This document shows, one piece after another, positions 10,980 to 42,415 of a stretch of DNA of 64,000 nucleotides (its first letter is position 1; the number at the start of each line of letters is the position of its first letter). The stretch lies in NCBI GenBank assembly GCA_973895155.1, contig OZ316899.1, positions 15,651,974 through 15,715,973 on the forward strand, written 5' to 3'. This DNA is from Marsupella aquatica. Its lineage: Eukaryota; Plantae; Marchantiophyta. The notes under the pieces are model-generated. The model was not told the DNA's origin. It saw only the letters and a list, made by a program, of their open reading frames with translations, and did not search any database. Made by a program: the position numbers and the translations under genes.

Positions 10980-11310
10980 TAAAAGTGTATTATTATTTGA
11001 TTTATGTACATTTGGGCAATGAAAAGTGTACATTTGACCAATGAAAAGTGTACATTTGGGGATAAAAAAGTGTACAATTGGTCTAAAGAGTGTATATTTG
11101 GGCAATGAAAAGTGTACATTTGAGCATCAAAATATGTACATTTGGCTTAAAAAGTGTACATTTTAGTACATTTGGCCTAGAAAGTGTACATTTGAGTGAA
11201 AAAAGGATACATTTGGCTTAAAAAGTGTACATTTCAGTGCATTTAGTCTAGAAAGTGTAGCTTTGAGTGCAACAAAGAGTACATTTGGCCTAAAAAGTGT
11301 ACATTTTCCT
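10980..11310. repeat. Left subterminal repeat array (AAAAGTGTACATTT, about a dozen copies)
   Basis: Repeated aaaagtgtacattt at ~20-40 bp spacing, directly inside the TIR. Confidence 0.85.
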
Positions 11311-11527
11311 GAAAACTTTTATTGTAATCATTTAAAATAAAGAAATTAATAAAAAATATTTTTAATTATGCACAAAAAATAAACATTCATATTCATAATA
11401 ATCAAAAGTTTAGAAAATGAGTAGATAGTCTACTAAGTAACTAAACACTCAATGGCATGGTCTCACAATATATATAACTCTTACATAAAAACTAGTAACT
11501 ATCTAATTATATCTTAGCTAGTGACAA

Positions 11528-14500
11528 CTAAGTGTACTTGTCCATCCTTTGGAGATAACTTTGGACAGTTTGTAGAACATTTCGAGGAATCTTCAAACCT
11601 CTGCCAACCATGTTTTCTTCCTTCATTCCAGATTTAAAACCATACATTGCAGAATTTGCATACTGCCAATGTTGAGTGTTCTCACCAAATCCTGGATCTC
11701 GTTCCCATGTCTTGGTGGACATGAAACAATTGAGATACCTAGCACTCTCACTCACATCAAGTTTAGAGTGTTTAGGCCTCCACCATTCCACGGGGAACAT
11801 TGGAGCATATTTTTGAGTCAAAGGAGGGTCTCTTGAAGATGCAATTGGGACTTCATGCTTAGGGTCCACCTGACCCAAAGCTCTCACCAACCAGAAATGA
11901 CCTCCACCATTTTTCTTCTCCCAATCATCCTCGGGTCGAAGAAACACAAAGTTTCCTTCACAAATATCCTGGAGGGGAATCCACCGTCCTTGTTCTCTCT
12001 CAGCTCAAGATCCAACAAATGGTGCTGCTTGATCTTCCATCTCTTCCAAGACTTCATTTTGAAGAGCTGTCATCTCTGCATTCTCCTCATCTTCACTTAG
12101 AGGACCACTCTGTTCGCATGCCGATTGGTTGACCTTGTAACCAGTGCTGTGGTTAGTCTTAGGCCAAAATCCATTTTTCAATGGAAATTGATTATTTCCC
12201 TCCCCTTCCATTGCAAGCCCATTTGACAACAGCTCCACAATTCTTTCCCAATATTTAACAAGAGGAAATCTTTCCTTGTATGCTATTGACGTCTCATCAA
12301 TGCAACTCCTTCTCAAAAAATCAAGGTACTTGTTAAGGAATGGGATTATCTCTTCTGATTTTTTGTGTATCTCTCCTATGGATTTAGCTAAGGGTTGTCC
12401 ACTGGGTAAAAGAAGAGAATTTGTTATTGGATCAGTTGCCCAAATGCACCTTCCGCCAACGGGAGCCCAAGCTTGCTTAACATGGGACTTATACTGAAAT
12501 ATTGGTACATTATCTCTCATAGAGAAAAGAAATGATACCGGTTTTGAGTGACCTTGAATATCTTTGACCTTAAAACTTTGAAGATATTCTTTGTAAGATG
12601 CAACTTCTTGTATCAATCTTGGAACTGGATGAATGCTCTCACATTCCCAAACCTCTGCCATTAGTGCAAGAAGGGTTGCAACTTCCTTGTGCTGAACTTG
12701 ATATGATACCTTGGAAAATAGTGCATCAACATCTTCGTGCGTATGACCAACCATTAGAAAGGACATTTGAACAGTTTCAAATATTCCTCTACTCACAAGC
12801 TCCGAGCAAAATGCCATGACCATTTGGTTTTTGTTGTCCTTTGCTGAATTATCCATTTGCAATGTTAGGTGCCTTGGCAAGGGCATGAACAAAGGACTGC
12901 CCTTCTCACCACCCACGTCCCCTCCATCATCCTCATCCTGTCGGGTTGGGATGGTCTCAATCTGACTGTCAGCAGCTCCATCTTCAGAACCAATATACCT
13001 ATTTACTTGAATATTCTTTGGTTCCAAATATCCCGACAAAAATGCATCAAAGTCAAGTAGGGCTTGAAAGAAAGGTCTGTGAGGTTCCCAATGCAAGCCA
13101 TCAAGCATGTCACCTGTCTTGTCTCCATTGTACTCTTCAAGATCTCGAAGACACTTAGCCAAGGATGTCACTGTGAAATCTGCATCTCCTGGCCAAAGGC
13201 CAGTGACACTAAAGTGTGCATATACTCCTGGATCTCTCCCGTGGGTCAACATCCCTGTGAGAGCGATAGGTAGCGGCATTCCATGACCCGAAAGTGATTT
13301 AGGAGTACTAACCATTTTTGGAATCCATGTCTTTGCTTGATCCATCTTGTCGTGAATAATGCAAAGATATTCTCTTGGATGTTGCTTGGCCATCACTCGA
13401 TGAGCGTAGTAAACATATCTACGTGACATTTGCTCACGAAGATGTTGAGCTCTTTTTTCTTCAATTTCAGCACGTTCTTTTTTCCTTCTCTCTCGCATCA
13501 AATTGTCTTTGTATTCACAACAAAGCGTACACTTGGCAAATGCGCCATCCTTGTGAAAACTGAAGTTTGCAAATGATGTGCTCCATATCTTGTAGAGAGT
13601 GTTATCCGTAACAGGAGGAAGCCCTTCTTCCTTCATCTTTGTTCTCACATCTTCCAAAATCTCTAACTTTTTGTAACACGCTGGAAGTCGATACTCAATG
13701 CTGTCTGTCCCATGAGCCCCTCCATAAGGCATATGAGGCATTGGCTCTGCATTTTGAGTCAAAAATGCCTCTAGAAGAGCTCGTGCATGCAAGGTATTTG
13801 ACCTTGTTTTCTTCAAGCCTGTGTTCCCATGGAACCCAATTTTGCAACCCTCCATGTATCTTCTCTTGTAATCATAATACTTGGTGTGACTAAAACCATG
13901 GATGGTTGCAAATGCATCTTTACAGATGACCATACCTTTGAGAACATGGTGTCCCTTATCACGAACATCATCCTCTCTGTAGTGGAAGAGGTTGAAAATG
14001 TGTGATGTTTTGGACTCGCTAGACATCCCGTGAAATTCCATCCTAACATCTTCTATATCTTCCCTTGGCATAATGAGACAACATTTATGCTTGCAGCAAT
14101 TTACTCTTTTGATCTTATCAATTGCGGCTTCTGTTGTTTTTGAAACTGCCTTGGTTTGCAAGAGCCTCCTTTTCTTCTCAACAGGATCAACTTGATTCCT
14201 CTTGTTGAAGTTATATGGCCTTTGACGACATCCGGATGCGGATCCAACCACATGATCCGGATTCAGATCATCCCTATCCATTGACTCCATATTCTCTGTA
14301 CCTTCTACCAGAATGTCTGACAAAAATTTTCCAGTTGCTACTAGTTTTGTGTGATCAATTTGCCATCGAACCAAACTAATTACTCCCTTGTGAATGCTTG
14401 GAAAGTATTGCGATTCCATGACATCTTTCACAGCAACCCCTACATAGTCTTCTCCCAGGATTTCATCATCAACAGCCGCCGTTGCTTGAGGCACAGTGAT

Positions 14501-15343
14501 AGTCCCAATGGCAACCTTACTCGATCGTCCTGAACCAATGTATAATTTGACCAACTCTGACATCCAATTGGACCGTTGGTAATAATCATAATGAGTTTTG
14601 GTCAATTTTGTTGATGGAGAATGTGAGACAAAACTCTCCTCAATTAAAACATCGCCATCACCTTGCTTCTTAGAGGAAGACTTTCTACCTTCATCAACAT
14701 TCCAACCTTTTTTATGAACATCGACCAAGTCCCAGAGAACCCATGAGTCTTTTGCCTCTTCAATTGTTTCAGCCCCATTGTGTATGTAAGGTAAAGCCTT
14801 ACTACCATGAATAACATCAGTGATTTTCACACTGATCCGAGACTCACCAAGTAATATGTTGTGACATCGGTCCTTTGGATTTACCTTGAAAATAACTCCA
14901 AGGGCTACACAACACCCATCAATGAGCATTTCAACCTCGTCCCCTTGCCTTAGAGTGTTTGATGCATCCTCCATAACAATTGTAGGAGATTTATCCAAGT
15001 TATTATCTGGTCGAGTTGAACAACTACCAGTACTGATGCATTTTTGGGAATCTAGAGTTATAGAGAGATACGTGCACGAGATCTCCCAAATAACACATGA
15101 GTCAATGGCATCAAAAAGATTTTCTACCCTTGGTAGTGGAAATGGTAGTTTTCGAGTTGGCTCAAAAACCTTCTCCACGAGCACACCAATTCGATTATCC
15201 CCCAACAATATGTTGTGCACCCTATCCTGGGGGTTAATTTTCTGAACTGTCCCACAACTGACATCATATCCATCAATTGTCAAGGTCACATCATCACCTC
15301 TTGAAAACCTTCCAGTCATTCTTGGATTTAGTAACCTGCACAA
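11528..15343 (-). pseudogene. Sola-like (DUF7869-type) DDD/E transposase with N-terminal Transposase_23/DUF8039-like repeats; one premature TGA at 12005-12007
   Basis: Motifs CIIHDKMDQ, LTLQMDNSAKDNKN and FLMVGHTHEDVDALFS, plus Cys-rich CCKHKC and CTLC. ORF 11528-11947 is in the same frame as 12005-15343, separated only by a TGA (likely CGA>TGA). Confidence 0.8.
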
Positions 15344-15439
15344 TTTTCAGAAAAACCATCACAAATCCGAATGACAAGAATTTGAAGAGACTCACAATTA
15401 TCCATACGGTCATTTGATTGCCATTCCGAGAATCCAAAC

Positions 15440-16860
15440 ATTGGCTCAACTATCACGCTTGGATTGGGGTGGTCCAAATCAAAACCATGAAGATTGTATT
15501 CCGAAGGTCAAATTTAAGCATCTCACTTGAATTGGGATCGTCCAAATCCAAACCAACCTCTATCCAACACACCCTCTTGGATTTGGATGGTCCGAATCCA
15601 AACCCAGATGGGATCCCAAAGGTCCCAATTCAACAAACGCGCTTGGATTGGGATGGTCCGAATCCAAACCCAGATTTTATTTCAAAGGTCCCAATTTGAG
15701 CACCGGGCTTGGATTCGGATGGTCCGAATCCAAAACCAGATTGTATTTCAAAGGTCCGAATCCAACCCACCATCTTGGATTCGGATGGTCTGAATCCAAA
15801 CACAGATTCTATCCCGAAGGTCCCAATTCAACAAACCGGCTTGGATTGGGATGGTGCGCGAATCCAAACCCAGATTGTATTTCAAAGGTCCCAATTTAAG
15901 CATCGGACTTGGATTCGGATGGTCCGAATCCAAAACCAGACTGTATTTCAAACGCCCAAATTCAACCATCTCGCTTGGATTGGGATGGTCCGAATCCAAA
16001 CCGAGATTGGATCCCAAAGGTCACAATTTAAGCATTGCACGCTTGGATTCGAATGGTCCGAATCCAACACACCCTCTTGGATTCGGACCATCCGAATCCA
16101 AAACCAGACTGTATTTAAAACGCCCAAATTCAACCATCTTTCTTGGATTGGGATGGTCCGAATCCAAACCGAGATTGGATCCCAAAGGCCACAATTTAAG
16201 CATTGCACGCTTGGATTCGGATGGTCCGAATCCAACACACCCTCTTGGATTCGGACCATCCGAATCCAACACACCCTCTTGGATTTGGACCATCCAAATC
16301 AAAAACCAGACTGTATTTCAAACGCCCAAATGCAACCATCTTGCTTGGATTGGGATGGTCCGAATCCAAACCGAGATTGGATCCCAAAGGTCACAATTTA
16401 AGCATTGCACGGTTGGATTCGGATGGTCCGAATCCAACACACCTCTTGGATTCGGACCATCCGAATCCAGCACACCCTCTTGGATTCGGACCATCCGAAT
16501 CCAAAACCAAACTGTATTTAAAACGCCCAAATTCAACCATCTCGCTTGGATTGGGATGGTCCGAATCCAAACCGAGATTGGATCCCAAAGGCCACAATTT
16601 AAGCATTGCACGCTTGGATTCGGATGGTCCGAATCCAACACACCCTCTTGGATTTGGACCATCCAAATCAAAAACCAGACTGTATTTCAAACGCCCAAAT
16701 TCAACCATCTCGCTTGGATTGGGATGGTCCGAATCCAAACCGAGATTGGATCCCAAAGGTCACAATTTAAGCATTGCACGGTTGGATTCGGATGGTCCCA
16801 ATCCTAGAAATGGATTGGATTCGGATCATCCGAATCCAAACAACAATCTAGGATTAGGAC
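15440..16860. repeat. Array of palindromes TTGGATT(C/G)GGA-NNN-TCCGAATCCAA in higher-order units
   Basis: Dozens of 25-bp palindromes with 11-bp arms, separated by recurring spacers (aaccagactgtatttcaaacgcccaaattcaacc; accgagattggatcccaaaggtcacaatttaagc). Confidence 0.95.
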
Positions 16861-17609
16861 CATTATAATCCACACATCAAGTCTGGATTCAAATGGTCTA
16901 ACTCCACAATGAAGATTATGTTGAGATGGATATATTGAGATTGAGATCTCTTCCTAATCAAATTTAGACATTCCGGGTTTTTCGGAACATTGGGTAATTC
17001 GTGAAATAATAATTGGGAAGTCACTAGAATGCAGAACAAAGTGAAAGGGTTCGTCTCTCTTCCCTAAGAACTCAAAATAAGCAAAGCGACTAAGACCATA
17101 ACTCACCTCAGCAGTCTTGTTTTTCCAGTATGTCTCCAAGGTTGGCTCTGCTACCTCTAAATTGATGAATAAGTTCATATCAAACTGACTAAGAAAGCTA
17201 TCAAAGCCACTTCAAGTCTAAACTCCATCAGAGAGAAGAGCTGAGGAGGAGTTGCGCAGACCTGGATGCCCAAGTGAAGATATGAAACTAAAACAACAAT
17301 GATGTCCGTAGAGTACCTCTTATACTCATGGGTTGGTATGTTTGGCCCTGAATGTGCGATCCAATAAGGTTGAGGCAACACTGAGTATCGCGGTTAGAAC
17401 AATCATCCAATCCTTTTTCAATCCATTGTGTCAGACAATACAGCTAGCGTCCCACCCAAACTGATAGGACCAGATCCCTTCTTGGTCTCTATCCGTACAG
17501 AGATGATCCGTACAGAGATGATCCGTGCAGCGATCATCCGTACGCAAACAAGCCTTTCAGGAGGGGGTAAAGGGAGTACGAGGTCTTCCACAGACCTCAT
17601 TGTTGTTTT

Positions 17610-17715
17610 GCTCTCTGTCGCTCCTCACTCTCGCTCCTCCCTCTCGCTCCTCACTCTCGCTCCTCCCTCTCGCTCCTCGCTCTAGCTCCTCATTCTCGCT
17701 CCTCGCTCTCGCTCT
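17610..17715. repeat. CTCG/CTC pyrimidine microsatellite between the divergent genes
   Basis: ctcgctcctc-type low-complexity run upstream of ATG 17844. Confidence 0.7.
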
Positions 17716-17843
17716 TGGCTGGCTGCCGCCGCTATCCCTTGCCCTTGCCCTAATTGCCTTCTTGCCCTAATCTGCTGCAACGCCCTAGATCTTGCCCATC
17801 TTGACGTGTCCTCAATATATCCTGCCACGTGTCACTCCTAAAA

Positions 17844-20800
17844 ATGGAAGTTGCCAAGAAAACCGTCATCGTCCTGCTCGCCGAAGAATCTGATGACTTG
17901 GATCTCTCCTCTGTCGGTGATCTTGTGGCCCTAGCGCTTAGGGATTCCCAAGAATTTCAATCTCAAGTCCAAAGTAAGTTTCCGGAGGTTTATTCATGCA
18001 TCTTAAGTTGTTGGATTCGGATGGTCCGAATCCAAGAGCGTTGTTTGGATTCGGACCATCCGAATCCAAGTGGGTTGTTTGGATTTGGATGGTCTAAATC
18101 TAAGAGGGTTGTTTAAATTTGGACCATCCAAATCCAAGAGGGTTGTTTGGATTCGGACCATCCGAATCCAAGTGGGTTGTTTGGATTCGGATGGTCCGAA
18201 TCCAAGTGGCTTGATTGGATTCGGATGGTCTGAATCCAAGAGGGTTGTTTGGATTCGGACCATCCGAATCCAAGTGGGTTGTTTGGATTTGGATGGTCCG
18301 AATCCAAGTGGCTTGATTGGATTCAGATGGTCCGAATCTAAGAGGGTTGTTTGGATTCGGACCATCCGAATCCAAGTGGGCTTCTTGTATTGGATTCGGA
18401 TGGTCCGAATCCAAGAGCCCTCAATCTCACTTTGACAGTGATTTCTTAAAACAAATTTCATGGATTTCAAGTCTAATATGAATTTTCACTCTCCAATGCA
18501 GAGAGTGATCTGGTGAATACAACTCTCGCCATTTCAGAGGCAGACTGCGACGATGGGCTCATTTTGGAGGACCGCGATCCAGGATTTCGGTGGGGACTTG
18601 AGTTCTCGCGAGTTAACTTCCGCCTGAATTCATTTAACATTCAGGATCCAGTGTTATGTGTCAAGATCAGGACAGGCAACAACCAAACATTGGTCATCGG
18701 ACCCGTGGTCTCTGTGGGAATGATAGGAAGAGGAATGAATACTATCATTGTAGAGGTGTCGGACACGATGAGGTGGGCAAAGTTGCAGCTCCCCACAAAG
18801 GCTTTCTCGGCCGAGTTCAATGTGGAATGGTATGCAAGTGGGGAATTAAGTGTGTTGTCGATGGGATTCTTTCCAAAATCCTACACAAAGGAGAAGATTA
18901 TTGGAGGACTGAAGGGAATGCTTCCTTTGGACATTTTTTATGGGTTTCTTTATTTGAAACTCAAAATTGTAAACAACCCATCAAAGTTCTCTCTTCCATC
19001 CACATGGACTCTTAACAATTTGCTTGAGAAAGCAGGTCTGGTGTCACCAGACTCAAATGTTTGGATCGCCAAGGCACTAGCCTTTGCACACACGCTTGAC
19101 CTGGAAAAAGCAAATCTATGGGTAGAGTCTTTGGTGAAGTTGAGAAAAAGTACACAACCACAGAAAATAATTGAGTCTACGCCAGCCAAAGGAACTCCAG
19201 CAACTACGACGGAGACAGCACAAACTACTGCAGCAACAACCATGGATAGAGCGGCAGGCAAGCGAAAGCAGAGGGAGAAGAAGCTTCTGGTTGAGAAACC
19301 TACTTCAGTTGAGAAGAAGATCACGGCTCCAACCGAGAAGAAGAAGCTTCCAGCCGAGAAGAAGAAGCTTCCAGCCGAGAAGAAGTCGAGGGAGAAGAAG
19401 AAACAAAAACCCGACACCGGAGTTGTGAATTCAACTCCTATAGAATTTTCATTACATGCTGAAGATGAGGGTGATAGGCCACATGCTCCAGAGGAGAAAG
19501 ACGTCTTAGAAGGGAATGAAGTTCTTCAACAAATGGAGCAGTACTATACTTTTGGGATAAACGAAATTTTTCTGATCCCAGTTGAAAGTATTTTTGCCGC
19601 ACCAGCGAGACTATGCTATCGGATGATGAATTTTGATCATGTGCAAGACATTGCTGATTCCATGATCAAAACACCTGGGCATGAGCCACATGTCGCTGAT
19701 TTGATTCCTTTTAACGTCGAGCGAAGAAAGGTACTCCACTTTGAGAATACGGAGTCAGACCGGAAGGATTTTTTGGCCGGAGTGAAAAAGGGCGAGGTCC
19801 AATTTCTAGCCGTTAGTGGTCAGCACTCTGCGAGAGCTGCGAGATGGATTCGTGATTGGGCAACGAAGGATGCCAAGCTCACCCAGTTGGCCAAGAAGTT
19901 AGAATTTAGGAAATCCAGAATATTGTCTGATCGCACACCGTCTTCAATTCTTGTTGAGCACTCCATGAGATCGAACGCCATCAATAGCACGATGGTGTTT
20001 CAGTCTTGCTTTAAAGATATAGTTGTCCATGCGAGGCGGCAGTTTGTTGAATGTGGAAATCCAGACAAACCAAAACATGGCGACAACAAAACAAATGCTC
20101 AAGACAACCAAAAATTTCAGGTAAGAAATGTGATTACTTTGTATGCATTTCTCTACCATAGAGAGTAATTCTATTTTGGATTCGGATGGTCTCAGTCCGA
20201 CACGATTTATCAAAGAGTATTGGAACTTTTGGAATGTTTAGTACGAGTTTTGTTTTTGATTGAGACCATCCGAATCCAAAACTATTATCGCACATTAGAA
20301 TCCTTTTTTTCCAACCCTTGCGTTGGGGATAACTGACTAGCTTTCCTTTTGGATTGTAGGATTGGTTGGCTCTGGCAAGAATGACTATGGGCAGGAAGGA
20401 CTTGCAAAATGTATACTGGCTACTTTTTGCGGACAACGATCTTTTTGAGTTGTGGCGGTTAGTCTGTGAGATGTGGTTGCATGGGAAACTTCCTGATGGA
20501 GCTGGGATGGAAGGAAATAACAAGTCCGAAAAAGCAATTACCGTTGCCATGTTTTGTCCCTTTGATGGTGAGTTGATCTCACAGAAAGACATCACAAAAA
20601 TCCTGACACAAGTGAAGTCAGGAAAGGCATTGCTGAAGAAAGATGCCACAAATAAATCTGACATACCCTCAATAGAGGAGCTTGCGAAGGATGTGAAAAA
20701 AGTGAGGAAGCTCAAGTCTCTCATTGAGGAGTACTACTTCGGCAAGGATCCAAGGAATTTCCCTTCGGATACCGACTGGAAGAAAGTTGTAGAGGTTCTG

Positions 20801-22735
20801 CCATTGTTGAGTGTTGACGCAGAATTCAGTAGATGCAGAAGAGCAGCTGGTGAAGTTTTTCTGTCAAATCTGTTGAAGCCAAATCATACCAGGGAGAGTG
20901 CAATCTTGCCAATAGCTCTGGTGATGCGCCTTGATGACATTTATTGCCAGAAGTTTGGCGGAGGGACACATTCTCGGAGCCAACCGTGGGTCACGTTCTT
21001 TAGTGACAATCTAATGAAAACAGTTGATCCACCAGCAATAGAAGAATCATCTCCAACGTGCTCACTTGCCATTGTTGACTTCAGTCGAGATCACCAAAAG
21101 CTGTGGACGGAAGCAGAAGTTTTGGTCTTTCTGCAATACATTGTGGAGCTACCACGAAATCTTACAATCGTTGTAGCCATAACTGTTCATCCGGGGCCTC
21201 TTGCAATGAATGTCCTAAGCTCACTTCAAAAATTGGGACAAGAGAAATCTCTCACCATTCACATTGAGTATGGGAGTTATTCTCGAGAGGATCAACCGCA
21301 CCCGCTTGATTCGTGTTGGGGAGGCGGAATTGAAGAAGTTATATTCGCAGGAATTTCTCGAGATGAAAATGTGAATTGGAATGATGTTTTCAAACCCAAT
21401 CACCCAAAGCCAAAATTCTTTTTTGGTTCAAAAGATACTGATTTTGAGGTCACCAAGATTGACACTGGGAAGGCAAAGGTTGACACAGACGACGTGTCAA
21501 AACCCGAAGATCTAAAAATGATGCTGACCCCAGAAGAGGCGACCAAGGTTTTGCACATGGCCCCTCGATTTGAGATAGTTGGTGCTCGTGGTGGTTGGGT
21601 GAATCCACATGCCAAACCCACGCGGATGATACAGAGGATTATTGAATCCTTGTCAGAAGCTGGAGACTTGATTCTTGATTTTTTCTCGGGTGGTCAAGTG
21701 ATGAAGACAACATTCTTGGTGCAACGCAAATGCTTTGTTTATTGTGACTCTCAAGATGAGAGACACTTTGTGGAAGCGTATGCTTCATTCCTTTGCGAGA
21801 GGGTCCCCTCAATCAATGAAAATTGGGATCCTCGTGGTGGGAGTTCTAGGCATTGGAAACCCACTATTGCGGATGTTTCTGCCGAACATGAATCAGCTGA
21901 TAATTCTGAAGAAGTGGGCGCTAAGTCAGTCAAAGATGATGGGGCATCAGAGGTGGCGTATGCAAAGAATTTGGATGACCGTGTAGGTCAAAGTGAAAGC
22001 ATAGAACCCTACGATGTTGATGATAATGTTGGTCTTGCACCACGCCCTTCATCACGTGCAGATGACGTCCCTTTGGAACCCTATGAAGTTGAGGTTGATG
22101 ACAACTTGGACAAGGATGGTCTCAATCCAAATGTGGTGCAACGAGAAACGGACAAAATTGGTGATCCGATTGACATTGATACATTTGAAAATCGTTCGTC
22201 AACCAATTTGGTCGCGGACGGTGGAGACAGACAGGTCAATTCGAATGAAGCTGACACCCAAAATTTGATTCCCGGGATGGCTGTCGAAGTGCGTGAGATT
22301 CCCATGACCCCAGAAGCCCGTGCATCAGCGACTGTTGACAACCAGGCAAGTGCTTCAATTTGTCCTGACACACTCTTTTCAGCTTCTGATGACAAATTGG
22401 TTTTTGTTCCTTCACACTCGGGAAGTCCAGTTGTCCTTCCTCTCTCAAAGAAAAAAGGGAATAGAGTTGGACCAACCGGATGGAGGTCACTTGAACGTGA
22501 TGCACGATGTTATGTGTGGAAAAGTGGGCCAAATAGAGGCCAAGAAGTTTCATTGGATGCTGCTCCATCGATTCTTAACAGGAAGGAGTATAAGAGAGGA
22601 GAATTGGGATTGATAACTCCTGTTTGGACGTCACCTTATTGGGTAGAACAAAGTACTTCAGATGTCAATTTTGAAATCCAAGAGGAGCTGGGTGTTGATA
22701 TTATTGATGAATACGGATCTCTTTTTTCAGACTGA
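17844..22735 (+). CDS. Intact 3-exon, 1374-aa ParB/Srx-like domain + N4/N6 (beta-class) DNA methyltransferase-like protein
   Basis: Exons 17844-17973, 18502-20120 and 20360-22735 join in frame at GT-AG (4125 nt). ParB-like: IPVESI...YRMMNFDHVQDIADSM...FLAVSGQHSARAA. MTase C-terminal motifs: NPHAKPTRMIQRIIESLSEAGDLILDFFSGG...QRKCFVYCD. The expected DPPY position reads AIVDFSR (degenerate). Confidence 0.75.
18011..18414. repeat. Intronic array of 12 palindromes with ~34-bp period
   Basis: 25-bp TTGGATTCGGA(TGG/CCA)TCCGAATCCAA plus a 9-bp spacer, lying wholly inside intron 17974-18501. Confidence 0.95.
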
Positions 22736-22796
22736 GATCAAACCGTCTGACTTTCCATTTTTTCATACCAATCTAAAATACTTCTCGGTCTCACAG

Positions 22797-24008
22797 AATG
22801 CGGTCAGCAATTAGAGCCTCGATATCCACCTACGCTCTTTGGGGCTTCTAAAAATGGTATGTAGGTTTTCTTTGTTGTTAGTCATTGTCTTGTATTTTTG
22901 GACTGAGACAGTCTCAGTCCAAAGTTCAAATTTGGTTTTCTTTCTAAGAGTTGTATTTGTTGCACTTGCAGAATCGAGACCTTGTCCCATCAAGCGGAAG
23001 TTGCTGATTTTGGATCTTAACAAAATACTTTGGGATTCACTTGAATTCCAAAGCAAGGGCAAATCCAGAAACATTGTGACCCCAAATGGAGTGCATTGGG
23101 ATAGATCAAATGGAACTAGTCGCATGTATACACAGAGGCCAGGGTTCCATGAGTTTCTAAAGTTGGTTTTTGACCGGTTTGACGTTGCAATTTGGACATG
23201 TGCTGGGATACCACGGACAGTGAAAATGTTGAACATGATGTTCACTGTTGAGGAGCGGTTGAAACTGAAGTTTGTATTCACACAGGTGGAAGCCTTTGAC
23301 ACAGGCATTCAAAGGCGTGACATTACAAATGGAAAGGCAAATGTGCTATTGAAGGATTTTCGGGTGGTATGGAGTGCATTTGGAAATCTATATGATGAAA
23401 CCAACACACTCCTTGTGGATGACTCCCCCTTGAAGGCATTTGCCAACCCAGACATGACCGGACTATTTCCAGTGCCCTACACGCATGCCAATCGTGGAGA
23501 CAATTTTCTTCTAACAATTCTTTGGCCATGTCTTGAGAAACTGTCACATGCAAGTGACATTCGTTGTTATCTTCTCCTAAACTCTCCAAAGTGGTCTCTA
23601 TTGCACATTAAGAGAGACAAGGCAAAAAATGAGATTACTTATGATCAACTTAGTAAGAGATGTGCAGCAAAAATTTGGAAGTCACAGTATAGGCATAGTG
23701 TGCTGGACCTCAATAGCAATGAGATTCCTTGGGCTGTGAAGCACCGTATATGTAGCTTACGTCCTGAGGTGGAACTTGACGATGCACTTGTCACCTCACT
23801 TGCTAGATCATTTGTAGGATGGGAATATTCAGGTCTGTATAGAGAAAATCCCAGACACTTTTTGCGGGAGATTATAGCAGTTAGGAACAACACCACCAAA
23901 TTTCATCTCCCTGAAGATAAAGGGAGTTGCAACCGTGACATTAGGGTAGATAGTAAAGGAGACAAGGGCACGTGCTCAAATAAATATTGTAAGGAGCACT
24001 TTGTTTAG
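22797..24008 (+). CDS. FCP1/NIF-like HAD phosphatase domain protein (DxD motif reads DLN); possibly spliced to the upstream gene
   Basis: KLLILDLNKIL, QRPGFHEFLKLVFDRFDVAIWT, LLKDF, TLLVDDSPLKAFANP. An in-frame 60-nt mini-exon (22797-22856) splices to 22972. Confidence 0.8.
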
Positions 24009-24265
24009 AGATCTGACTCATGTTAAGCCCATTAGATAGTAAAAATGGGTGCCAGCCCTGGATATTCATTGTAAGTTTGGACACAATTGTATATAATTAT
24101 TTCACACATTATCAATCAATGGTCCTTGCCTAGGCTTCTTTGTGCGTAAATGTTTTTACAAGTATGATCTCTATCCCATGGTTCTTTGTGAACTAATAAG
24201 TAATATAATACTATTATAATTAATATAATATAATATATTAATATAATACTAATAAGATTTGGCCT

Positions 24266-24326
24266 ATAAAGTGTACATTTAGATATCAAAAAGTGTACAT
24301 TTGGGGACATAAAAGTGTACATTTCA
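24266..24326. repeat. Right subterminal repeats (3 x AAAGTGTACATTT)
   Basis: Same motif and same strand orientation as the left array. Confidence 0.85.
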
Positions 24327-25464
24327 GGACTGATTTGTGAACAAAAGAAAATACACTTTTAATGAATAGGCTGATTTGTGGCTTGTGGCACAGGTCGATC
24401 TCAAAGACAAGTGGCGGAATTTGGAGAAGTCCTCTCACGACGATTGACTAGCTATGGCCATACTGGACAGGGGATATATGGCTTGTACATGATTTCAGAG
24501 CTGCTTTGTTGCCATCAATTACACACATAATATATATAATTAATATATATACACACACAAGAAGTGAGCTCCGATTGCACGAGTGATGCATCGTTTGCCT
24601 CTATATATCTCCGAGGCGGTGAGGTAGAGCACACAGGTTCGTGTCTGGAATGCTCCATAAAACAACCTTTGCAGCATCACAATATAGGATGTTTGTTAGG
24701 ATTGGATTGGGCTTTGGCCGGTCGTGTGCACCAACTCAATCTGGTCGGGAGAGTGGTCAGGAGAGATCACTCGAGCAGGCAAGTGTGGGTTTCTAGGTAG
24801 GTGGCATGGCACTATCTTCCCTTACCAGGAGTTCGCCTATCGGCTTAGTTATGCAATATAACAATTGAATTGCAATCTACCTATATATACATTTCTTTTT
24901 GTTTTTTGTTTAATTCAAGCGCGCCTTCTCGTCTCCTTCCAGGCTGCCCTTTCGGTATTTGGTTTCACAATATTCAGTTTGACAATGTCAAGTTAATTCA
25001 TCCATTTTGAACAATAATGCTGGGCCTGGATGGGATGAGCCAATTTATCAGCCTAAAAAGCTTGACACCACCCCCATCCTATCAACGTCGCATCTGAACC
25101 GCAAAATCCAACATCCTTCAACTCTTTTCCTCAAACGTCAACCCATGGTCATAATCTGCATCCAGAGAGGTACTTGCGCATGACGACAGAAGGTACAAGG
25201 CCAAACGCACTTGTGCTTCATTCGCTCACCCCAAAACCCTGAATACATGCTCTCATCCGCCCTAACCAAAGCCTGGCCGATTTCATTTGATGTCCCAATT
25301 CATTGACCTACCACAGGCTAGTAACTCAATTCCGATGATGATATTGTACTACATAATCATGCTGCCTACAAAACAAAAATTCTGCACGACTGTCGGGTAG
25401 AGCCCTAGCTGATCAAAATACCTCCCCAACAACACATATCCTTGCTTAACAGATGTTGTTGTAG

Positions 25465-25890: not shown

Positions 25891-28473
25891 ACAACCTACG
25901 CTTCCCACTAGTTGAATTTCCTGTCACAATAAAGCCACAGTTGTGCGTCACACTTTCCGACATGGTGCCTTCTAACATCACGGGAGGATATACATTTGGA
26001 TCCATGCGTTCTAAAAATTGGATACCAATGTGATAGTCCAGATGACAAAGCTTAGTTTCTTTGGGGTACATTGCATTGGTGGTGATGTGATGAACTTTGT
26101 TCATGATTTATGTCATCATTTGGGCTATTTGTTTTGTCAAATCCTAAACCCTAAACACCTAAACTCCCAAGACGAAACTCCCGAGCCCATTGTGCATGCC
26201 ATAAACCCAAGGATAAGCATTCAACCGGCCCATAACCTGTGATTGTGTGCCGTTACAAAGAGATGGAATGAAATGATTGCTCATTGCTTTCATTCAGTGT
26301 AGGCCGTGTGAATCACATTGGGTCCGTCCGAAAAGTAAAAAATGCGCCAGGAAAAACCCCGGTGGATACACGCCCAAAGCCAGCCACTCACACGACAGTA
26401 GTGTAGAGCAAACCGGACAGAACATGAAAATGACAACATGTGCTTCTATGAGACGATTGAACCAAGTACACTGCTAAGCCTCATGACTGGCGTCTTGGAG
26501 ACACCTACTCCAACGTCTAAAGTTTGCCTATCCTAAACCTACCCTAAACCCTAAACATAAACCCATAATCTTGCGTTTGATCGTCGGATGGCTTGCTGTC
26601 GGACTTGAACAGATTCCTCTCAGCGGTCCGGATCCCATAATTTCCTTCAGCCTGGCAATAAACCGGGATGATAGCCGGACAGCCACCAAACTTGACGCCA
26701 TCGAATGATGGCTAGGAAATGCTACTGCCTTCTGCTTCCGGCTCTTCCCCCATGATGCCGTCACAGGCTCGGAGGTTACAAACTCCACCTCAGCAGGCTG
26801 GGCCATCGATGGTCCCACCGAGTGGGTACGGCCATCTCTTGTAGGTCGAGGACGGTAGTGGTGGGTGTAGCCATCACTGGGCGAGATGGGAAATTGGTCC
26901 CATATGAAGTCGTCGGGTCCCCCGGGGGCTCGAGTCTTCCATGTCCGAGCTCACCTCAATTGTGTTCACCTCCGTAACCACACGGCACTGAGGTGCGGAT
27001 GCAACATAAGTGCACTGTGCTCATAAACCCTAAACACTAAACCCTCAACCCTCAACCCTCAACGAACCGGTACATTAAGAGGTTGAGTCCAACCCCAATC
27101 CGGTCTTCTATTCCTTTGCTGGAAACAGTTGATCCTGTAAATATTACTGTGAGTTTCAAAGATGGATCAAACATTGTGTAGTTGAGGCAACTGAGAAATG
27201 CCCTAGACTGAGACATACCTCTAGAAGAATCTTACTAGTGTAATGCCCAATGAAGAAATACCTACAGAAGAAGACTTGTGCTCATCTACTCTAATTCTCC
27301 TATTTACTATCTAGGTAAGTTCCCACAAACCTCCAAGTACCACTCCTCAAACTGAACTCGCTTGTGGCCTCCATAGGTACCTCCTCCTACCTTCAATTGT
27401 TACCCCTAGTAGCTCCTTCCCGGTCTCTAGTAACTCTCTAATTCTTGACCCTAAATCCTGGGCACTCATCTAATCCTCAAATCTCTCTCTCTTGGATTCC
27501 CACTCCGATCTTTCCATACTCAACCCTGGGGTGTCTACTTGACCTGGTATCACTCCTTGGATCCTTGAGCAGCACCCATAAGCCACAAGCAATGCAAACA
27601 AATTTTCCCTCGAATCTCAATGCAGGTTCCAATGGAAATGGGCTGCGAATCATGACGATAATGATGATGCGCGCAGAAATTTGTTTGGATTATTGTACAA
27701 AATTGGATTGATCTTCTTCACGCAAATGATACCAAGTTATTTAAAAGGTCCAAAATCTGATAGCTCCTGTGTTGTACAATACGATGAAAAATGTTTGGCT
27801 TCAATTTAACCTGATTAAAAAAAAACAGAAACTGAAGACAACAATTCTTTCAGGTTGCTTCATATATAGTCCGGCTGAAGAGAGCCCCAACTCCTTTTTG
27901 ATCATTTACTTGGAATCTCCAAAAGACTCACGTCATGCTTTCCATGCTGAACAAGAGTGCAACACTGCAACATGTTCTTCTAAGCTTATTATACTTTAGG
28001 GTAGTTGCCAATCGATTCCCTGCCAGTTTTTGCCAAAATCAACATCAACTGGCCAGGCTGCACCAGACGTTTCTCGCATATGGGACCCCTCACCTCAATC
28101 CCAAAGCTGGCGATTGAAGGCACCAATGGCGATGGAACATGTCCAGCTGTGCTGCTCTACCTTCCAGCATCAGCCTCGCCCCAGCATGATTCTAACAAAA
28201 ACATGGCAAAATGGAATGCAAAGAATTTTACAACCCAAAACTCTCTCCACAACGCTGAATCACAAATTCGTCGGAATCAAACACAAATTACCGTCCAGGT
28301 CGTCTCCTTGGAAGATGGCCTCTTGGTGAATGACATATTTGTCTTTCACAGGATTACAAAATCACAGGGTAGTGTCGGGAATCATGAGAGTACTACTAAC
28401 TTGAGCCACAGTTCCGCCCATCAACACTGCAATTAATTCAGCCTAATCCAATTCAGAACTCGTCAACAAAAAC

Positions 28474-31460
28474 TGTCACGTCGTCGGCTGCGGCCTTAAC
28501 TCAGACTTCAGCTTAGACGGGCACATCCCTCGTAAATCTGAGGGTTCGGGCAGGAAGGGAAGCACGTAATGCACCTTATTCTCGTAAACTAGCGCTAAGT
28601 GCGCATACTGCTAAATACGGACACCTCCTAGGTATGGTTTGTGTTTCGCCGTCGGAACGTACCTTAGTCGATAGCAGGATCGACCCCGGCTTAAGGGCTT
28701 CTAAGCCTTCGTGCTGTCCGCCTTTGATCCGGATTCGATGATACAGGTCCTCAACCCGTGCTTGCAACCACTTACCCGCAGGCTGCACCCTGTGCACGTC
28801 TCGGGTAGTGCGTTCGGCCTGGCGCTGCCACCCATATACGAGAAACCCACACACATACACGCGCACATGCATACAATCTCGATTTACACGAAGGAAAATG
28901 ATGGGAAAGGATTTTACTACAAAGGGAACATATGCGTACACTTAGTTGACCCGACAGCCCCGGAATGAACAGGTTCAAGGCCGAGGGTGCACACTACAAC
29001 GGAGCCCGGCTCCACACTCGCCCGGCGAGCTTAGTCCTACCCCCTCCCCTTGGTACTCTTTCATTCCCAGAGGTCGGGACTCCCCGCACATACCGCGGAC
29101 GTCCAACTCTACAACTAAAAACCCCCCTGCCTCTACCGAGGGGTGCACTAAATACTAAGGGACGAGGGATGGGGTGTCCTCTCGCCGAAGATTCGCTGAC
29201 TAAGGTCCTAACTAAGCTGACAGTCAGGCCGGAAAACGGCTGTGTCTTATTAGAAGATCCTAATCTACGCAGGTTGGACAGCATGGCAGCGCTGCTGTAC
29301 CTAAGGCAGGTGCCTGTCCCAAGAGCCTGACTAAGCCAGTCCTAATCCTAATCTATTCCTACTCCGCTGCTAATGCCTGGCACGCTTGCCAGAGCCGCCC
29401 GAATGGGAGCGGCCATCCCGCTGCCTTCGAAGCCTATCATTGTCCGCCTTGAGGAGCTGGACCTGGTCCAGCAGAGATTCGTTCTCTCGCCTCGCCGCGT
29501 CCGTCTCCTCTGCTGCCTCCTGACATGCCTCCTCCAGCTGTTGGGCGTCGCTCGTCAGTTTACCCGCCAGCTGGTCCTGCTTCTCGGCCTCGGTTTGGAG
29601 CCGCGCCACCTCGGCCTGCAGCGTGGCTATCTCCGCCGTGTACCGCTGGGCCCATTCCTCGGCCTCCTCCAGGTCTTTCTGCCAGGTGACGGTTTGATTC
29701 TTCAAACTGTCAATCTGGTTCCGGAGTCGTGTAATCTCGGCCTCGTTCCCAGCTTTGGCCTGTTTGGCTAGGGCGGTAAGAGCGTGCGCCTTTGCTAACA
29801 ACTCATCGGCGGCTGCAACCTTGGGTCGTAGTTGCAGAAGCTCAGCCTCTTGAGCCGCAACTTCGTTCTTTAGGTACACGGACTCCACCCGGTACCGCTC
29901 TATCCTCTGAAGGGCCTCTGACTGGGCCTGACCTGCCTTTACTGCGGCAACCAACTCCTGATTGAAGAAACAGGCTACCTTCCGGGCCATGAACTCCCCG
30001 GTATCCCGGGCAATTTGATGAGAGAAATCTCCCAGAAGCCCGTTCAGAAATGTACCCGATACGAAGAGTTCCGGGTGGTCCAGGTTGTGCCTGTCCGGAG
30101 TTGGGCACGGGCAGACGTCAACACACGCGGGGGGCGGGGCAGTGACGTCCAGCCCTGGGGATGTAACGTTGGAAGGGGCTGGAGTGTCCTCCTGCAGCAA
30201 TGTCCGGTTCTCCAGAATAGCCACCGGTGGGTCTTTGGGAGACCCGGGCTCGGGTAAGACCTCCGTCGTACCGACTTCTATACTTAGCTTGGCTTGTTGG
30301 GTTGCATCAACGGTTGCGACAACCGACCCATCCGGTACCTCCTCGGTTACGACTACAGCTACTTGTGGAGGTGGGGTGGGTGAAGCTGGCGTGTCCGCTG
30401 GACTTCGGGCCTCGGGTTGGGGCCATCTCTCCAAGGCCGGGAAAACCCACCTAGTTGGGACCAGCTTTGTAACGTTGACACGGGGAAGGGTTCGTCGATT
30501 AAACCGGGCGTACCACTCAAGAATGATCTCGATGTGGCTAGCGAAATATGCCTTCCCGCCAATGTACAGCGTCTTCCTTCGCCGCTCCATCTCTTCATGG
30601 AATTTCTTAGCGAAGTACGACGCCCACTTCCTAGGTCAATAGTTCTCGACCTGGATAACTTGGGCGGTGGAGATCTCCCCCCGGGGTTCCATCATGTGGA
30701 GGGCGTACCTCTGGAACTCCAGTCGCTCAGCTATCTCGGGGATGAGGCAGGTCTTCATCATGAACCCGTTGTCCACTGCTCCCTCTGAGGGAAACTTGAA
30801 GATTGGTACTTGGCTCCCTTGCCCCCGGGAGCCCGTGATTCGACTCGATGGTCACCTTCGGGTAACCCAAAGATCATCCTGAGCCGTTCTTCCGTGAGGG
30901 ACATACTCCTTCCCCGCAGCCGAGTATGTTGACGCACGTCGTCATAATTCCTGACGAACTCCGTCATGTCCTCCCCGTAGTACCTGCAAGTGTTCCAGGG
31001 GAGGGAGGCGAGGTGCTCGAATCCCTGAGTCTTCAGGTACACCGCATGCTTGGGATGGAGGATGTTTTTGTGAACGTTTTCCCCCATGCGGTGCATCGTC
31101 ACCTTGGCTATGGCTACCGTGGCCAACGGTAACCCGGATGCAGTGGTGGATTCCTTCCTCTTCTTCCCCCGTGACTGGCTCGGGGAAGGTGACACTTCCC
31201 CATCCTCCCGATCGGGCCTGGGTAGTGCCACTGCCGTTAGTAATGGGCCCGGGGCGGCCATGGTCACATGTTGTCTGCCGGGGCCGCTCCTGGGGTCAGA
31301 GCAGGGGGTGGGGACGATATAGTGTCGGCCCCCTGAGCGCTTGTTCCTCTGGGCCGCCTGGTCAAGGGTGGGGTAGCCTCGTCGTCATCGCTAAGATCCA
31401 CGACGTTGATGACGGAGCGTACTTGTGCTGGCTGGGCGATCGGTGGTGGGGTTTGGCTAG
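28474..31460 (-). repeat. 3' LTR-like copy (no match to 45253-45775)
   Basis: Near-identical to 42416-45252. The right copy lacks ~155 bp corresponding to ~29346-29502. Confidence 0.85.
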
Positions 31461-31554
31461 GCTGCGGCTGAAGCTGAAGCTGAGCCTGAGGTTGCATGGG
31501 TATGGGTACGGGTTCGACTGAGTTGGTCATGTTGGTTGATGGTCGAGTTCCCAT
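29370..31554 (-). pseudogene. LTR-embedded accessory ORF A (PMD/Transposase_32-like + coiled coil), ~730 aa reconstructed
   Basis: ORFs 31264-31554, 30758-31267 and 29370-30590 join across frameshifts and a TGA that are absent in the right-hand copy. Motif HAVYLKTQGF...EFVRNYD...LRGRSMSLTEERLRMIFGLPEG. Confidence 0.7.
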
Positions 31555-31824
31555 GAAGCTCTATAGGTGCTGGTAGAAGTTCTCTGAAGCGAGTGCAGAC
31601 GACCTTGTCGAACGGGTAGTGTTGGACTCGCTGTTGATGATAGCCCGAACCTGAGCAGGGATGTGGTCGAAGTGATGTCATTGCAAGTCGATCGTACCCG
31701 GGATATTGAAGACCTCGTCCGGAAGCTGAAGCAATGCTTCCCAGAAACCGATATATTTGTCTCCGTTGAAGAAGTACCCAGATACTTCTGCTGGTCAGTA
31801 AAGCTTGCTCTGAGAGAAACCTCC

Positions 31825-34800: not shown

Positions 34801-34856
34801 TGGCTGAGGAGGAAGCGTTGGGGGCGTCCATTAAGGATCCACCACCGGTGTCGTGA
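31825..34856 (+). pseudogene. Accessory ORF B (PMD/Transposase_32-like + long coiled coil), ~1000 aa reconstructed
   Basis: Collinear ORFs broken by TAG at 32737 and 33247 and a frameshift near 33870. Motif FMAGSGL...LPW...DLLEFVGSW...IYGKDFYLTPKVIAKVFGLP. Confidence 0.7.
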
Positions 34857-35719
34857 CGGTGCAAGGGCGTCGTTCCTTTTAGGGAGGGCGGACGTGGAGG
34901 GAGGAGGCGTGAGTGGGCAGGGCGGGCGCTGATCTCCAAGTTTAAGATTAGGATCAGGACCAGGAGCGGCCCCGACACTTAGCTTAGTGGGATTGCGGTC
35001 CCACTGGTAGGAGCAACACTTGTGCTCCTGCCTTGCTGTACATAGGTAGATTCGGGCAAGTAGATTACTGTTAAGTAGATTAGGCTTACGATGCAAAGAA
35101 TGGCGGATCCACTACCAGGATAAGTACCTGGGCAGCGGGGAGCTTAGGGCCTCTTCTTTAGCAAGTTTTTAGTTTGCACCAGCCGGGCTGGGATCAAGTA
35201 GTACGAGAAGCTCTCGGTTAGTCATACAGTGACCCTTGTGTATATTCATGTTTCCTCATGCCTAAGAGCTGAATAGAGTTGGCCTCACGGCTTAGTTCGC
35301 AGAGCTTGTGTATGAGATGTACTGTTTGTATGGCAAGTGCATGGTATGACTCAGTCAGAATGAGTCATTTTGCTATTTGTGTGTCGCATTAACTTGTGTG
35401 AAGAGTGCCCACATCAACCAAAAGGAAGGAAAGTAAGTAGGGGAGTGAGAGTTGGATGTGTCGAGCTGAGATTTAGGTCTTAGCGGCTTAACCAAGCCTA
35501 TTGGGGATCATTCCGGCGGCGGAATCCAAACATACCTAACAAGACGGAGGGGAAGACAGGGGAAGGCCTAGATTAGGCCGGCTACGTATCTCATGACCCG
35601 ATGAAGGATCTGTCCAATATATGTGTGTAAAATGTTAATAGTAGTAGTAGAAGGTTAGCAGCGTCCCATGCCGCTAAGCCGCGGAAACGGCCTCGCCAAG
35701 CGCGAATCATGGTCTCCCC

Positions 35720-42403: not shown

Positions 42404-42415
42404 AAACAAAGGCTA

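Follow-up and report, generated by a model that had tools for sequence, protein, structure and literature searches.

Results

A transposon of the liverwort Marsupella aquatica encodes a protein of 1374 residues that joins a ParB/Srx-fold domain to a beta-class amino-methyltransferase fold, and the methylase part carries a conserved D-F-S-R at the position of the catalytic tetrapeptide DPPY. On balance, we favor a role for it as a non-catalytic accessory protein that recognizes its own element, and it probably reads the palindrome arrays of that element instead of methylating DNA. All positions below refer to the window, the whole 64,000-nucleotide stretch of contig OZ316899.1 that was analyzed.

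The host element and its gene order

That the ParB-methylase-like gene might be mobile had been suggested as one possibility, and it does lie within a transposable element. This 13.4-kb transposon (10966-24375) ends in 26-bp terminal inverted repeats that match perfectly, and a TTGT target-site duplication flanks it. It is complete, of the cut-and-paste type and apparently young, recent insertion being indicated by the perfect repeats. Its ends and other genes are:

10966-10991, no strand: left terminal inverted repeat, 26/26 complementary to 24350-24375 (E 2e-10), with TTGT at 10962-10965
12005-15343, minus strand: transposase open reading frame (DUF7869; Pfam PF25273, E 1.2e-43), divergent from the ParB-methylase-like gene
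22839-24008, plus strand: NIF/FCP1-type phosphatase, the third gene (Pfam PF03031, E 6.7e-15)
24268-24324, no strand: 22-bp subterminal repeats beside the right end
24350-24375, no strand: right terminal inverted repeat, with TTGT at 24376-24379

The stop that the original prediction placed in the neighboring transposase was not found: the frame is open for all 1112 codons. The transposase is 58% identical to that of a locus from C. fissa (Calypogeia), L001, where the NIF phosphatase occupies the equivalent position (53% identity) and the subterminal repeats match those of the window at 17/22 positions. The gene order, with the transposase head to head with the ParB-methylase-like gene and the phosphatase following, is repeated in L001, in the Riccia locus L004 and in L005. 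Architecture and order are kept between elements of two liverwort classes whose proteins are only about 38-58% identical. In Riccia gene models the phosphatase is fused to the methylase-like part.

Two further loci in the window had been taken for copies of the same gene. Neither was detected by the family profile, and the motif-I piece of the second is closer to bacterial-type methylases; by these sequence comparisons the window holds three distinct lineages at these loci rather than one gene in three copies.

Gene model

The gene is read on the plus strand as three exons:

17844-17973, plus strand: proposed exon 1, 43 codons and 1 base, with ATG at 17844, an open frame and a GTAAGT donor
18502-20120, plus strand: exon 2, an open frame in which a lysine-rich linker separates a conserved N-terminal region from the ParB/Srx-fold domain
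20121-20359, plus strand: intron 2, GTAAGA...TAG, with degenerate palindrome halves inside
20360-22735, plus strand: exon 3, a 791-codon open frame with a helical domain, the methylase fold, an acidic linker, a conserved C-terminal domain and the stop

As predicted, these join in frame with no stop inside, 130+1619+2376 = 4125 nt giving 1374 codons and a stop; intron 1 reads GTAAGT...CAG. The two proposed junctions fared differently. That between exons 2 and 3 (20120/20360, KFQ|DW) corresponds to RFQDW in the C. fissa gene model P0001, and a metagenome contig (L002) carries an intronless ParB-to-methylase frame of 1009 residues that is continuous across the join, which is thus backed by both sequences. 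For exon 1 and the junction 17973/18502, homology searches found no counterpart in L001 or L003. The Riccia model P0134 also has both the ParB and methylase domains in one protein.

The exons were each searched and folded separately, not as one joined protein. Exon 2 is 40% identical overall to its homologs P0005 and P0006, rising to 58-61% in the last 200 residues, and exon 3 has 199 relatives at E<=1e-3. All of the named matches in the family search are liverwort proteins.

Domain architecture and uneven conservation

The domains and motifs of the protein are:

19470-20120, plus strand: ParB/Srx-fold domain at the end of exon 2 (AF2, VIA-align, Foldseek)
19815-19829, plus strand: GxxR box of that domain, reading S-G-Q-H-S
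20366-20974, plus strand: all-helical domain, exon-3 residues 1-203, AF2 pLDDT mostly above 90
20975-21829, plus strand: beta-class amino-methyltransferase fold, exon-3 residues 204-488 (VIA-align and Foldseek)
21077-21088, plus strand: D-F-S-R at the motif-IV (DPPY) position, exon-3 residues 238-241, directly after strand beta-4 (LAIV)
21602-21694, plus strand: motif X (NPHAKP) to motif I (LDFFSGG), with Pfam PF01555, RsrI and PHROG matches
22361-22732, plus strand: conserved C-terminal domain, exon-3 residues 666-789, with an acidic linker of low conservation upstream

The original ParB label holds at the level of fold only, with a moderate Z of 7.6, and finds no match in the sequence libraries: searches of Pfam, PHROGs, NCBIfam and, with the family profile, PDB sequences returned no ParBc-type hit. 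In VIA-align the AF2 model of the domain (pLDDT 83.8) matched PadC (Z 7.6), KorB (7.3), SerK (7.1), the N-terminal domain of pNOB8 ParB (6.5) and Srx (5.9); the top eight of 48,161 chains were all of the ParB/Srx fold (Z 7.6 to 4.7), with unrelated folds beginning at about 3. Foldseek likewise placed Noc, ParB, PadC and Srx on top, at E 4e-3 and weaker. The arginine of the GxxR box, which contacts the nucleotide phosphate, is absent from S-G-Q-H-S and a serine is found instead; among 16 sequences S116, G117 and H119 never vary, while at least 90% keep Q118 and S120.

The all-helical domain has no family match in Pfam, PHROGs or NCBIfam and is 44% identical to P0001. The C-terminal domain, which is covered by many fragment matches, shows 45% identity to the same model, against 16% for the acidic linker.

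This pattern bears on whether the gene is merely a captured bacterial or phage gene in decay, functionless and open solely because its insertion is young. The perfect terminal repeats do mark a recent insertion, and in L001, the C. fissa copy, two stops interrupt the ParB exon. However, domain order, motifs and open frame are kept at 35-45% protein identity across Jungermanniopsida and Marchantiopsida, and conservation is strongly uneven along the protein, at 45-60% in the domains versus 16% in the linker. We consider decay highly improbable.

A methylase fold with a conserved, noncanonical motif IV

The predicted methylase fold is present. The AF2 model (pLDDT 84.7) aligns best to CcrM, with Z 17.4 and an rmsd of 3.9 over 218 residues, followed by RsrI (Z 15.9), MboIIA (15.8) and PvuII (15.2), and Foldseek also returns CcrM (2e-8). 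The METTL3-METTL14 and MTA1c structures match as well, with Z of about 11-12. The proposed kinship to the 4mC enzyme of bdelloid rotifers did not emerge as anything special, N4CMT scoring Z 15.1, below the adenine methylases. The motifs follow a permuted order: beta-4 and motif IV, the variable region, motif X and motif I.

Both of the stretches singled out in the original prediction, HAKP...GDLILDFFSGG and VDFSR, were located, at exon-3 residues 415-443 and 237-241. The former, spanning motifs X and I, is the sole part that sequence libraries recognize as a DNA methylase. It matches the Pfam profile PF01555 (N6_N4_Mtase), aligning to positions 163-192 of 221, but its 25.8 bits fall below the 26.7 cut-off; relatives score 17.5-26.7 bits. 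The family profile also matches RsrI (E 1e-4), and PHROG DNA methyltransferase families match the same stretch. Motif X, N-P-x-x-K-P, is nearly invariant (K in 63/64) and DFFSGG of motif I is found in at least 56/64 relatives. The strict conservation of these two motifs suggests that the SAM pocket has been kept, which would be unusual in a purely structural pseudo-enzyme.

At motif IV, the (D/N/S)PP(Y/F/W) tetrapeptide is missing, as had been noted, and D-F-S-R is modeled with high confidence (pLDDT 95); by structural alignment, the DPPY motifs of CcrM, RsrI and MboIIA fall within about 3-6 residues of it. A column census of 45 relatives gives a family consensus of D-[FL]-[STGA]-[RKH], with D in 42/45, F or L in 41/45, S/T/G/A in 40/45 and R/K/H in 38/45. 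None of the 45 has the proline and aromatic residue, and [DNS]PP[YFWH] occurs nowhere in about 169 eukaryotic relatives; the sole relative that contains it is the bacterial-type P0144. Nor does a canonical motif align elsewhere in the fold: we rejected DPPA at residues 221-224 as a catalytic motif, as it sits in a non-conserved loop with a pLDDT of 64. The description of the motif as degenerate is misleading. Because the replacement is conserved in about 45 relatives and motifs X and I are nearly invariant, we regard D-F-S-R, on sequence grounds, as a selected variant and not a product of decay.

The possibility must be weighed that the protein is catalytically active and SAM-dependent, with D-F-S-R as an unorthodox catalytic loop, and that it methylates the palindrome DNA or another substrate and so marks its own element. 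The whole fold is preserved, as are motifs X and I and the motif-IV aspartate, and conservation extends to the replacement residues, the fourth of which is basic. To our knowledge, however, every characterized amino-methyltransferase has a motif IV with proline and an aromatic residue (DPPY, NPPF, SPPY or NIPY), the combination that is found in none of the 45 relatives. In motif I, which here is F-S-G-G-Q, Q or V takes the place of the final FxGxG glycine, the ribose-binding acidic residue after beta-2 is variable (D in 23/60), and the Pfam match, under its cut-off, covers only 30 residues. We think such an enzyme unlikely, though activity is assumed in the algal literature (PMC12477816).

Among the folded parts of the protein, the TRD-like segment evolves fastest, at 18-28% identity versus 45% for the methylase core, which fits the recognition role favored here. 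It is, however, short, charged and modeled with low confidence (pLDDT 51-73), and so may not read DNA but form a mere loop.

Element-specific palindrome arrays

Two arrays of a 12-3-12 palindrome, CTTGGATTCGGA-NNN-TCCGAATCCAAG, account for its matches in the element:

15459-16840, no strand: intergenic array between the two divergent genes, found by TRF, with 20 of the 30 matches
18007-18417, no strand: intron-1 array, found by TRF, 12 copies of a 34-bp unit that carries CTTGGATTCGGA-NNN-TCCGAATCCAAG

All 30 matches (0 expected by chance) are non-coding and lie within the element. The ten of intron 1 fall at 18013-18412, where the 3-nt spacer alternates between TGG and CCA. L001 has a different 12-3-12 palindrome at places that correspond to those in the window: it forms a 35-bp array (12.8 copies) immediately upstream of the ParB exon and recurs in the intron preceding the methylase exon and before the NIF gene. 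L005 has a third variant; each has its own sequence, in a 12-3-12 or 9-3-9 design. The short contigs examined for L002 and L003 have few or no such arrays. The motifs are thus family-specific, concentrated in non-coding DNA with none in exons, and change with the protein, whereas the subterminal repeats are conserved between the window and L001.

Discussion

The original prediction suggested a role as a DNA reader or shield, and the element-specific arrays make such a role more plausible. The protein would not methylate base amino groups but would bind DNA sequence-specifically, probably as a dimer, at the 12-3-12 palindromes. These predicted targets crowd the introns and the promoter region that the divergent genes share, and they differ between related elements. 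Binding could shield both divergent genes from silencing by the host, the role of VANC in Arabidopsis, or alternatively could assemble a transposition complex, the role of TNPA in En/Spm. A more specific form of this proposal, which we put forward tentatively as a real possibility short of a probable one, is a lock-and-key module: a non-methylating ParB/Srx and methylase-fold protein with a SAM-type pocket would read the 12-3-12 arrays of its own family, protein and palindrome coevolving. If true, each family would protect or mobilize solely its own copies.

The proposed tie between palindrome and protein comes from position, in three or four elements, and the arrays could have another binder, either the transposase or a host factor. 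We find it rather doubtful, if somewhat easier to entertain than catalysis, that the protein is a conserved accessory factor for which the palindromes are not the target, and which works alongside the NIF phosphatase on chromatin or the transposase. In that case the arrays would serve the transposase or a host factor as binding sites, or would be sources of hairpins or small RNAs. The NIF gene is an invariable neighbor, fused to the methylase-like part in Riccia gene models, the conserved C-terminal domain and long acidic linker are in keeping with such a factor, and clear arrays are absent from some related contigs. Against it, the subterminal repeats, where the transposase likely acts, stay conserved from one element to the next, unlike the palindromes; DNA binding is known both for ParB proteins and for beta-class methylases, with ParB and CcrM binding palindromic sites as dimers; and arrays lie in and beside the ParB-methylase-like gene in each element examined.

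This liverwort family shows that selection can maintain the methylase part after loss of its catalytic tetrapeptide, which makes reading or occupying DNA a likelier role than writing a mark. The element in the window is complete, with perfect ends, a target-site duplication, three open genes and GT...AG borders on both model introns, and is therefore a good starting point for work on binding, methylation and anti-silencing, in a plant lineage that includes a transformable model (Marchantia).

Comparison with known systems

The ParB-methylase design has so far been reported only in transposons of algae, and is now seen in a liverwort-type element. A ParB-like and DNA methyltransferase accessory gene is present in the brown-algal transposon Sola1-1_Ec32 of Ectocarpus (PMC12477816), with related reports from green algae by Iyer et al. 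(PMC4738411) and, for Plavaka PAG2/PAG3, from red algae, where tandem inverted-repeat arrays adjoin the ParB gene (bioRxiv 10.1101/2025.02.11.637652). These proteins were recently flagged as a possible new accessory class, putatively binding and marking their own element, and the algal authors propose that the protein binds and acts on the element's DNA, with marking as the proposed outcome (PMC12477816). By description the liverwort protein is alike: large (about 1100-1400 residues), with a ParB-like domain and then an N4/N6-type methylase domain, and encoded on the strand opposite the transposase in a large cut-and-paste element. It differs in its liverwort-type genome, in the NIF phosphatase as a third gene, in the serine replacing the ParB arginine and in the conserved D-F-S-R; the algal papers do not state whether DPPY is kept.

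With the beta-class methylases (CcrM, M.RsrI, M.MboIIA, M.PvuII and rotifer N4CMT) it has in common the fold, the permuted motif order and a motif X/I stretch recognizable by sequence. Unlike them, it lacks the PP-aromatic motif IV, has F-S-G-G-Q at motif I, scores below the curated cut-off, has a short and poorly ordered variable region, and embeds the domain in a 1374-residue multidomain eukaryotic transposon protein with introns.

METTL14 and Tetrahymena MTA9 are likewise methylase folds under selection without a working motif IV. Both are partners of an active paralog and have lost SAM binding, whereas the liverwort element encodes no active partner and the SAM-pocket motifs look conserved.

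For VANC of the Arabidopsis VANDAL transposons, both binding and loss of DNA methylation have been demonstrated (PMC5735166, PMC10398659). Here too a transposon-encoded accessory protein is accompanied by family-specific short motifs, tandemly repeated in non-coding regions, and protein and motif change together between families. The liverwort motifs differ in being 27-bp palindromes, and the likeness, from which a comparable function may be inferred, is one of organization.

A ParB-methylase-like gene carried by a transposon

The intact ParB-methylase-like gene is a conserved multidomain accessory gene of a transposon. It combines a ParB/Srx fold with a methylase fold from which the catalytic motif of amino-methyltransferases is missing. 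The surrounding element measures 13,410 bp; its 26-bp terminal inverted repeats are perfect, its target-site duplication is TTGT, and a 9-mer of the terminal repeat is found again seven times at 11022-11301. The 4-bp duplication hints that the element may belong to the Sola superfamily, for which Bao et al. (2009) reportedly described a duplication of this length.

Table. Features of the element (window positions unless stated)
10966-10991 and 24350-24375: terminal inverted repeats
Gene 1, minus strand: DUF7869 transposase, open for 1112 codons
Gene 2, plus strand, exons 17844-17973, 18502-20120 and 20360-22735 (130, 1619 and 2376 nt): ParB-methylase-like gene
17974-18501: intron 1 of gene 2, GTAAGT...CAG
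20121-20359: intron 2 of gene 2, GTAAGA...TAG
Gene 3, 22839-24008, plus strand: NIF/FCP1-type phosphatase
24268-24324: 22-bp subterminal repeats (in the Calypogeia fissa locus L001, 1345-1428 and 15016-15065)

The three proposed exons join in frame as originally predicted, summing to 4125 nt (1374 codons plus stop) without an internal stop codon; the stop that had been reported in the neighbouring transposase was not found in its reading frame. At the exon 2-3 join, KFQ|DW corresponds to RFQDW of the C. fissa gene model P0001, and the same join is internal to a continuous, intronless 1009-aa ORF on a metagenome contig (P0159, on L002), which runs from the ParB-like into the methylase-like part. 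The related proteins P0005 and P0006 stop exactly at the end of exon 2, reading into GT, so the position of intron 2 is common to relatives. Ahead of the conserved start of exon 2, an ATG occurs only in the putative exon 1; a search of the sequence 5' of the ParB exon in L001 and in the related short contig L003 found no homologue of this exon. Just 5' of the proposed exon 1, at 17491-17714 and presumably in the promoter region, lie short tandem repeats of 15 bp (3.5 copies) and 13 bp (7.5 copies).

The C. fissa element has the same gene order and is 58% identical to the window element in the transposase, 53% in NIF and 38% in the ParB and methylase exons. This order recurs in Riccia sorocarpa and in one metagenome contig (L005), and all named relatives come from C. 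fissa or R. sorocarpa. NIF recurs as the third gene throughout these elements. In several R. sorocarpa gene models (P0070, P0125, P0132) it is fused to the methylase-like part, which makes a spliced NIF-methylase-like fusion transcript possible. The nearest DNA for comparison is about 38% identical at the protein level, and synonymous sites are therefore saturated. The C. fissa copy is partly decayed, as its ParB exon (L001 8576-10129) holds two stop codons, and the annotated P0001 begins no earlier than the end of this exon.

A ParB/Srx fold without the signature arginine

Each search and each fold took a single exon, or a segment of one, as input. Conservation in the protein is highest over the final 217 residues of exon 2 (58-61% identity to relatives vs about 40% for the whole exon). 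By sequence, ParB was not matched in Pfam, PHROGs or NCBIfam, nor among the PDB sequences when these were searched with the family profile. The predicted fold of this part (pLDDT 83.8) was compared in an all-against-all structural search, where the best 8 of 48,161 chains all have the ParB/Srx fold and unrelated chains appear from about Z 3; Foldseek agrees, weakly.

Table. Structural matches of the two modelled parts
Exon 2, last 217 residues: PadC, Z 7.6; KorB, Z 7.3; serine kinase SerK, Z 7.1; pNOB8 ParB-N, Z 6.5; SbnI, Z 6.0; sulfiredoxin, Z 5.9; Atu1540, Z 5.7; human sulfiredoxin, Z 4.7
Exon 3, methylase fold: CcrM, Z 17.4 (218 residues, rmsd 3.9, Foldseek E 2e-8); M.RsrI, Z 15.9; M.MboIIA, Z 15.8; M.PvuII, Z 15.2; rotifer N4CMT, Z 15.1; METTL3 / MTA1, Z about 11.5

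Where ParB has a GxxR box, sulfiredoxin GCHR and DndB-type proteins DGQHR, this protein reads S-G-Q-H-S. S116, G117 and H119 are invariant among 16 sequences, at least 90% of which also share Q118 and S120. The ParB label given in the original prediction is therefore correct for the modelled fold, with the signature arginine absent.

A methylase fold with a replaced catalytic motif

We modelled exon-3 residues 1-520 with AlphaFold2 (115 relatives in the alignment, mean pLDDT 84.7), and a structural search with this model superposed residues 204-488 on beta-class amino-methyltransferases. In the putative SAM-binding half, which had been claimed as recognisable, motifs X (K in 63/64) and I (D-F-F-S-G-G in at least 56/64) are nearly invariant. 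The only Pfam N6_N4_Mtase match by sequence, at residues 414-443, stays under the cut-off (25.8 vs 26.7 bits). Further sequence matches, to CcrM, RsrI, MboIIA and phage methylase families, are weak, and tblastn against phages gave weak matches only (E 0.02), in the motif X/I stretch. The ribose-binding-acid column holds D in just 23/60. The target-recognition-like segment, which is short and poorly modelled, is the most variable part of the fold (18-28% identical vs 45% for the core).

The beta-4 strand LAIV (234-237, pLDDT 95) is followed directly by D238-F-S-R, which agrees with the VDFSR read earlier at the DPPY/SPPY position. Upstream of LAIV, the TFFSDNL strand mirrors the "GDC-L" start usual in beta-class amino-methyltransferases. 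From the aligned ranges and the known motif numbering of these enzymes, DPPY of CcrM, RsrI and MboIIA falls on model residues 232-235. Comparison of the profile with P0144, a canonical triple methylase, aligned only motifs X and I, so the residue-level placement of motif IV rests on structural offsets.

A profile search over 1.84 billion representatives returned 199 relatives, 45 of which cover the motif-IV column. Position 1 is D in 42/45, position 2 F or L in 41/45, position 3 S, T, G or A in 40/45, and position 4 R, K or H in 38/45. No [DNS]PP[YFWH] was found anywhere in the eukaryotic relatives; the sole relative with one is P0144, which is bacterial-type with three full N6_N4_Mtase domains. 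Elsewhere in the exon-encoded protein, the only candidate for a canonical motif was DPPA (residues 221-224; 21026-21037), which precedes the structural motif-IV position by 14 residues. We rejected it: it lacks an aromatic residue, sits in a loop with a pLDDT of 64 and is not conserved, its counterpart in relatives being VQPD, VDPE or ITPD. The canonical tetrapeptide has thus not simply degenerated; the conserved D-[FL]-[STGA]-[RKH] columns show that another conserved motif took its place. Decay of this gene is unlikely. Conservation of motifs X and I speaks for an enzyme that is still active through an unusual catalytic loop, a reading that we judge quite improbable.

Palindromes within the elements

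The palindrome GGATTCGGA-N3-TCCGAATCC has 30 matches in the window (at most 2 mismatches) vs 0 expected, and every one falls either in the stretch that separates the divergent genes (15579-16837) or in intron 1 (18013-18412). In full, the repeat unit is a 12-3-12 palindrome that recurs every 34 bp. The C. fissa element carries a different 12-3-12 palindrome, GTCGCCTCGAGA-CGA-TCTCGAGGCGAC (also given as GCCTCGAGA-N3-TCTCGAGGC), of which 12.8 copies form a 35-bp array immediately 5' of the ParB exon; more copies occur in the intergenic region, ahead of NIF and in the intron that precedes the methylase exon. The palindrome of L005 is GGATCGAGA-N3-TCTCGATCC. Between the window and C. fissa elements, the 22-bp subterminal repeats (AAAGTGTACATTTAGAGACATA in the window) agree at 17/22 positions while the palindromes differ, so likely transposase sites are conserved while the internal palindromes change.

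We infer that the protein binds the palindromes of its own element and does not methylate bases. Bound there, it could counter silencing, as do the VANC anti-silencing proteins of Arabidopsis VANDAL transposons (PMC5735166), or alternatively assemble the transposition complex. An accessory role unconnected to these palindromes is rather doubtful.

Other loci in the window

The two other loci thought to be copies of the gene are both missed by the family profile and belong to separate lineages.

Table. Other loci
56815-62937, minus strand: second ParB-methylase-like locus, of a different lineage
47393-50520, minus strand: third locus; Ulp1 protease domain at 47396-47860 (PF02902, E 2.6e-11)

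The second locus has a canonical D-G-N-H-R ParB box, with a weak match to TIGR03187 (DGQHR, E 0.015), and reads IYLPTGF at the motif-IV position. The motif-I piece of this locus (58561-59016) is nearer to bacterial-type methylases, with matches to Pfam N6_N4_Mtase (E 0.025) and to P0144 (1.6e-14, in a small database). In the third locus, a 40-bp unit repeated 20 times in tandem (48609-49414) lies upstream of the Ulp1 domain, and the ORFs claimed as methylase-like (49721-50445) have no family match.

Plant-type telomere-like repeats (CCCTAAA variants with 7, 14 and 21-bp periods) occur at 50796-51575 and 54514-56027, inside a satellite whose 353-bp unit is present in about 4.3 copies. The block at 28000-46000 is GC-rich (0.51-0.57 vs about 0.42 around) and contains several long ORFs, e.g. 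38435-42292 (minus strand, 1285 aa).

Comparison with known systems

In the literature searched, no paper connected ParB with transposons of liverworts. The Ectocarpus Sola1 element has a 1104-aa ParB-like and methylase gene opposite its transposase (PMC12477816), a ParB-2OG-oxygenase gene adjoins inverted-repeat arrays in red-algal Plavaka elements (bioRxiv 10.1101/2025.02.11.637652), and ParB-HTH-Dam fusions of chlorophytes were catalogued earlier (PMC4738411). Transposon ParB-methylase genes as a kind are already known from the algal reports; what is new here is the land-plant family, with its conserved non-canonical motif IV and absent ParB arginine.
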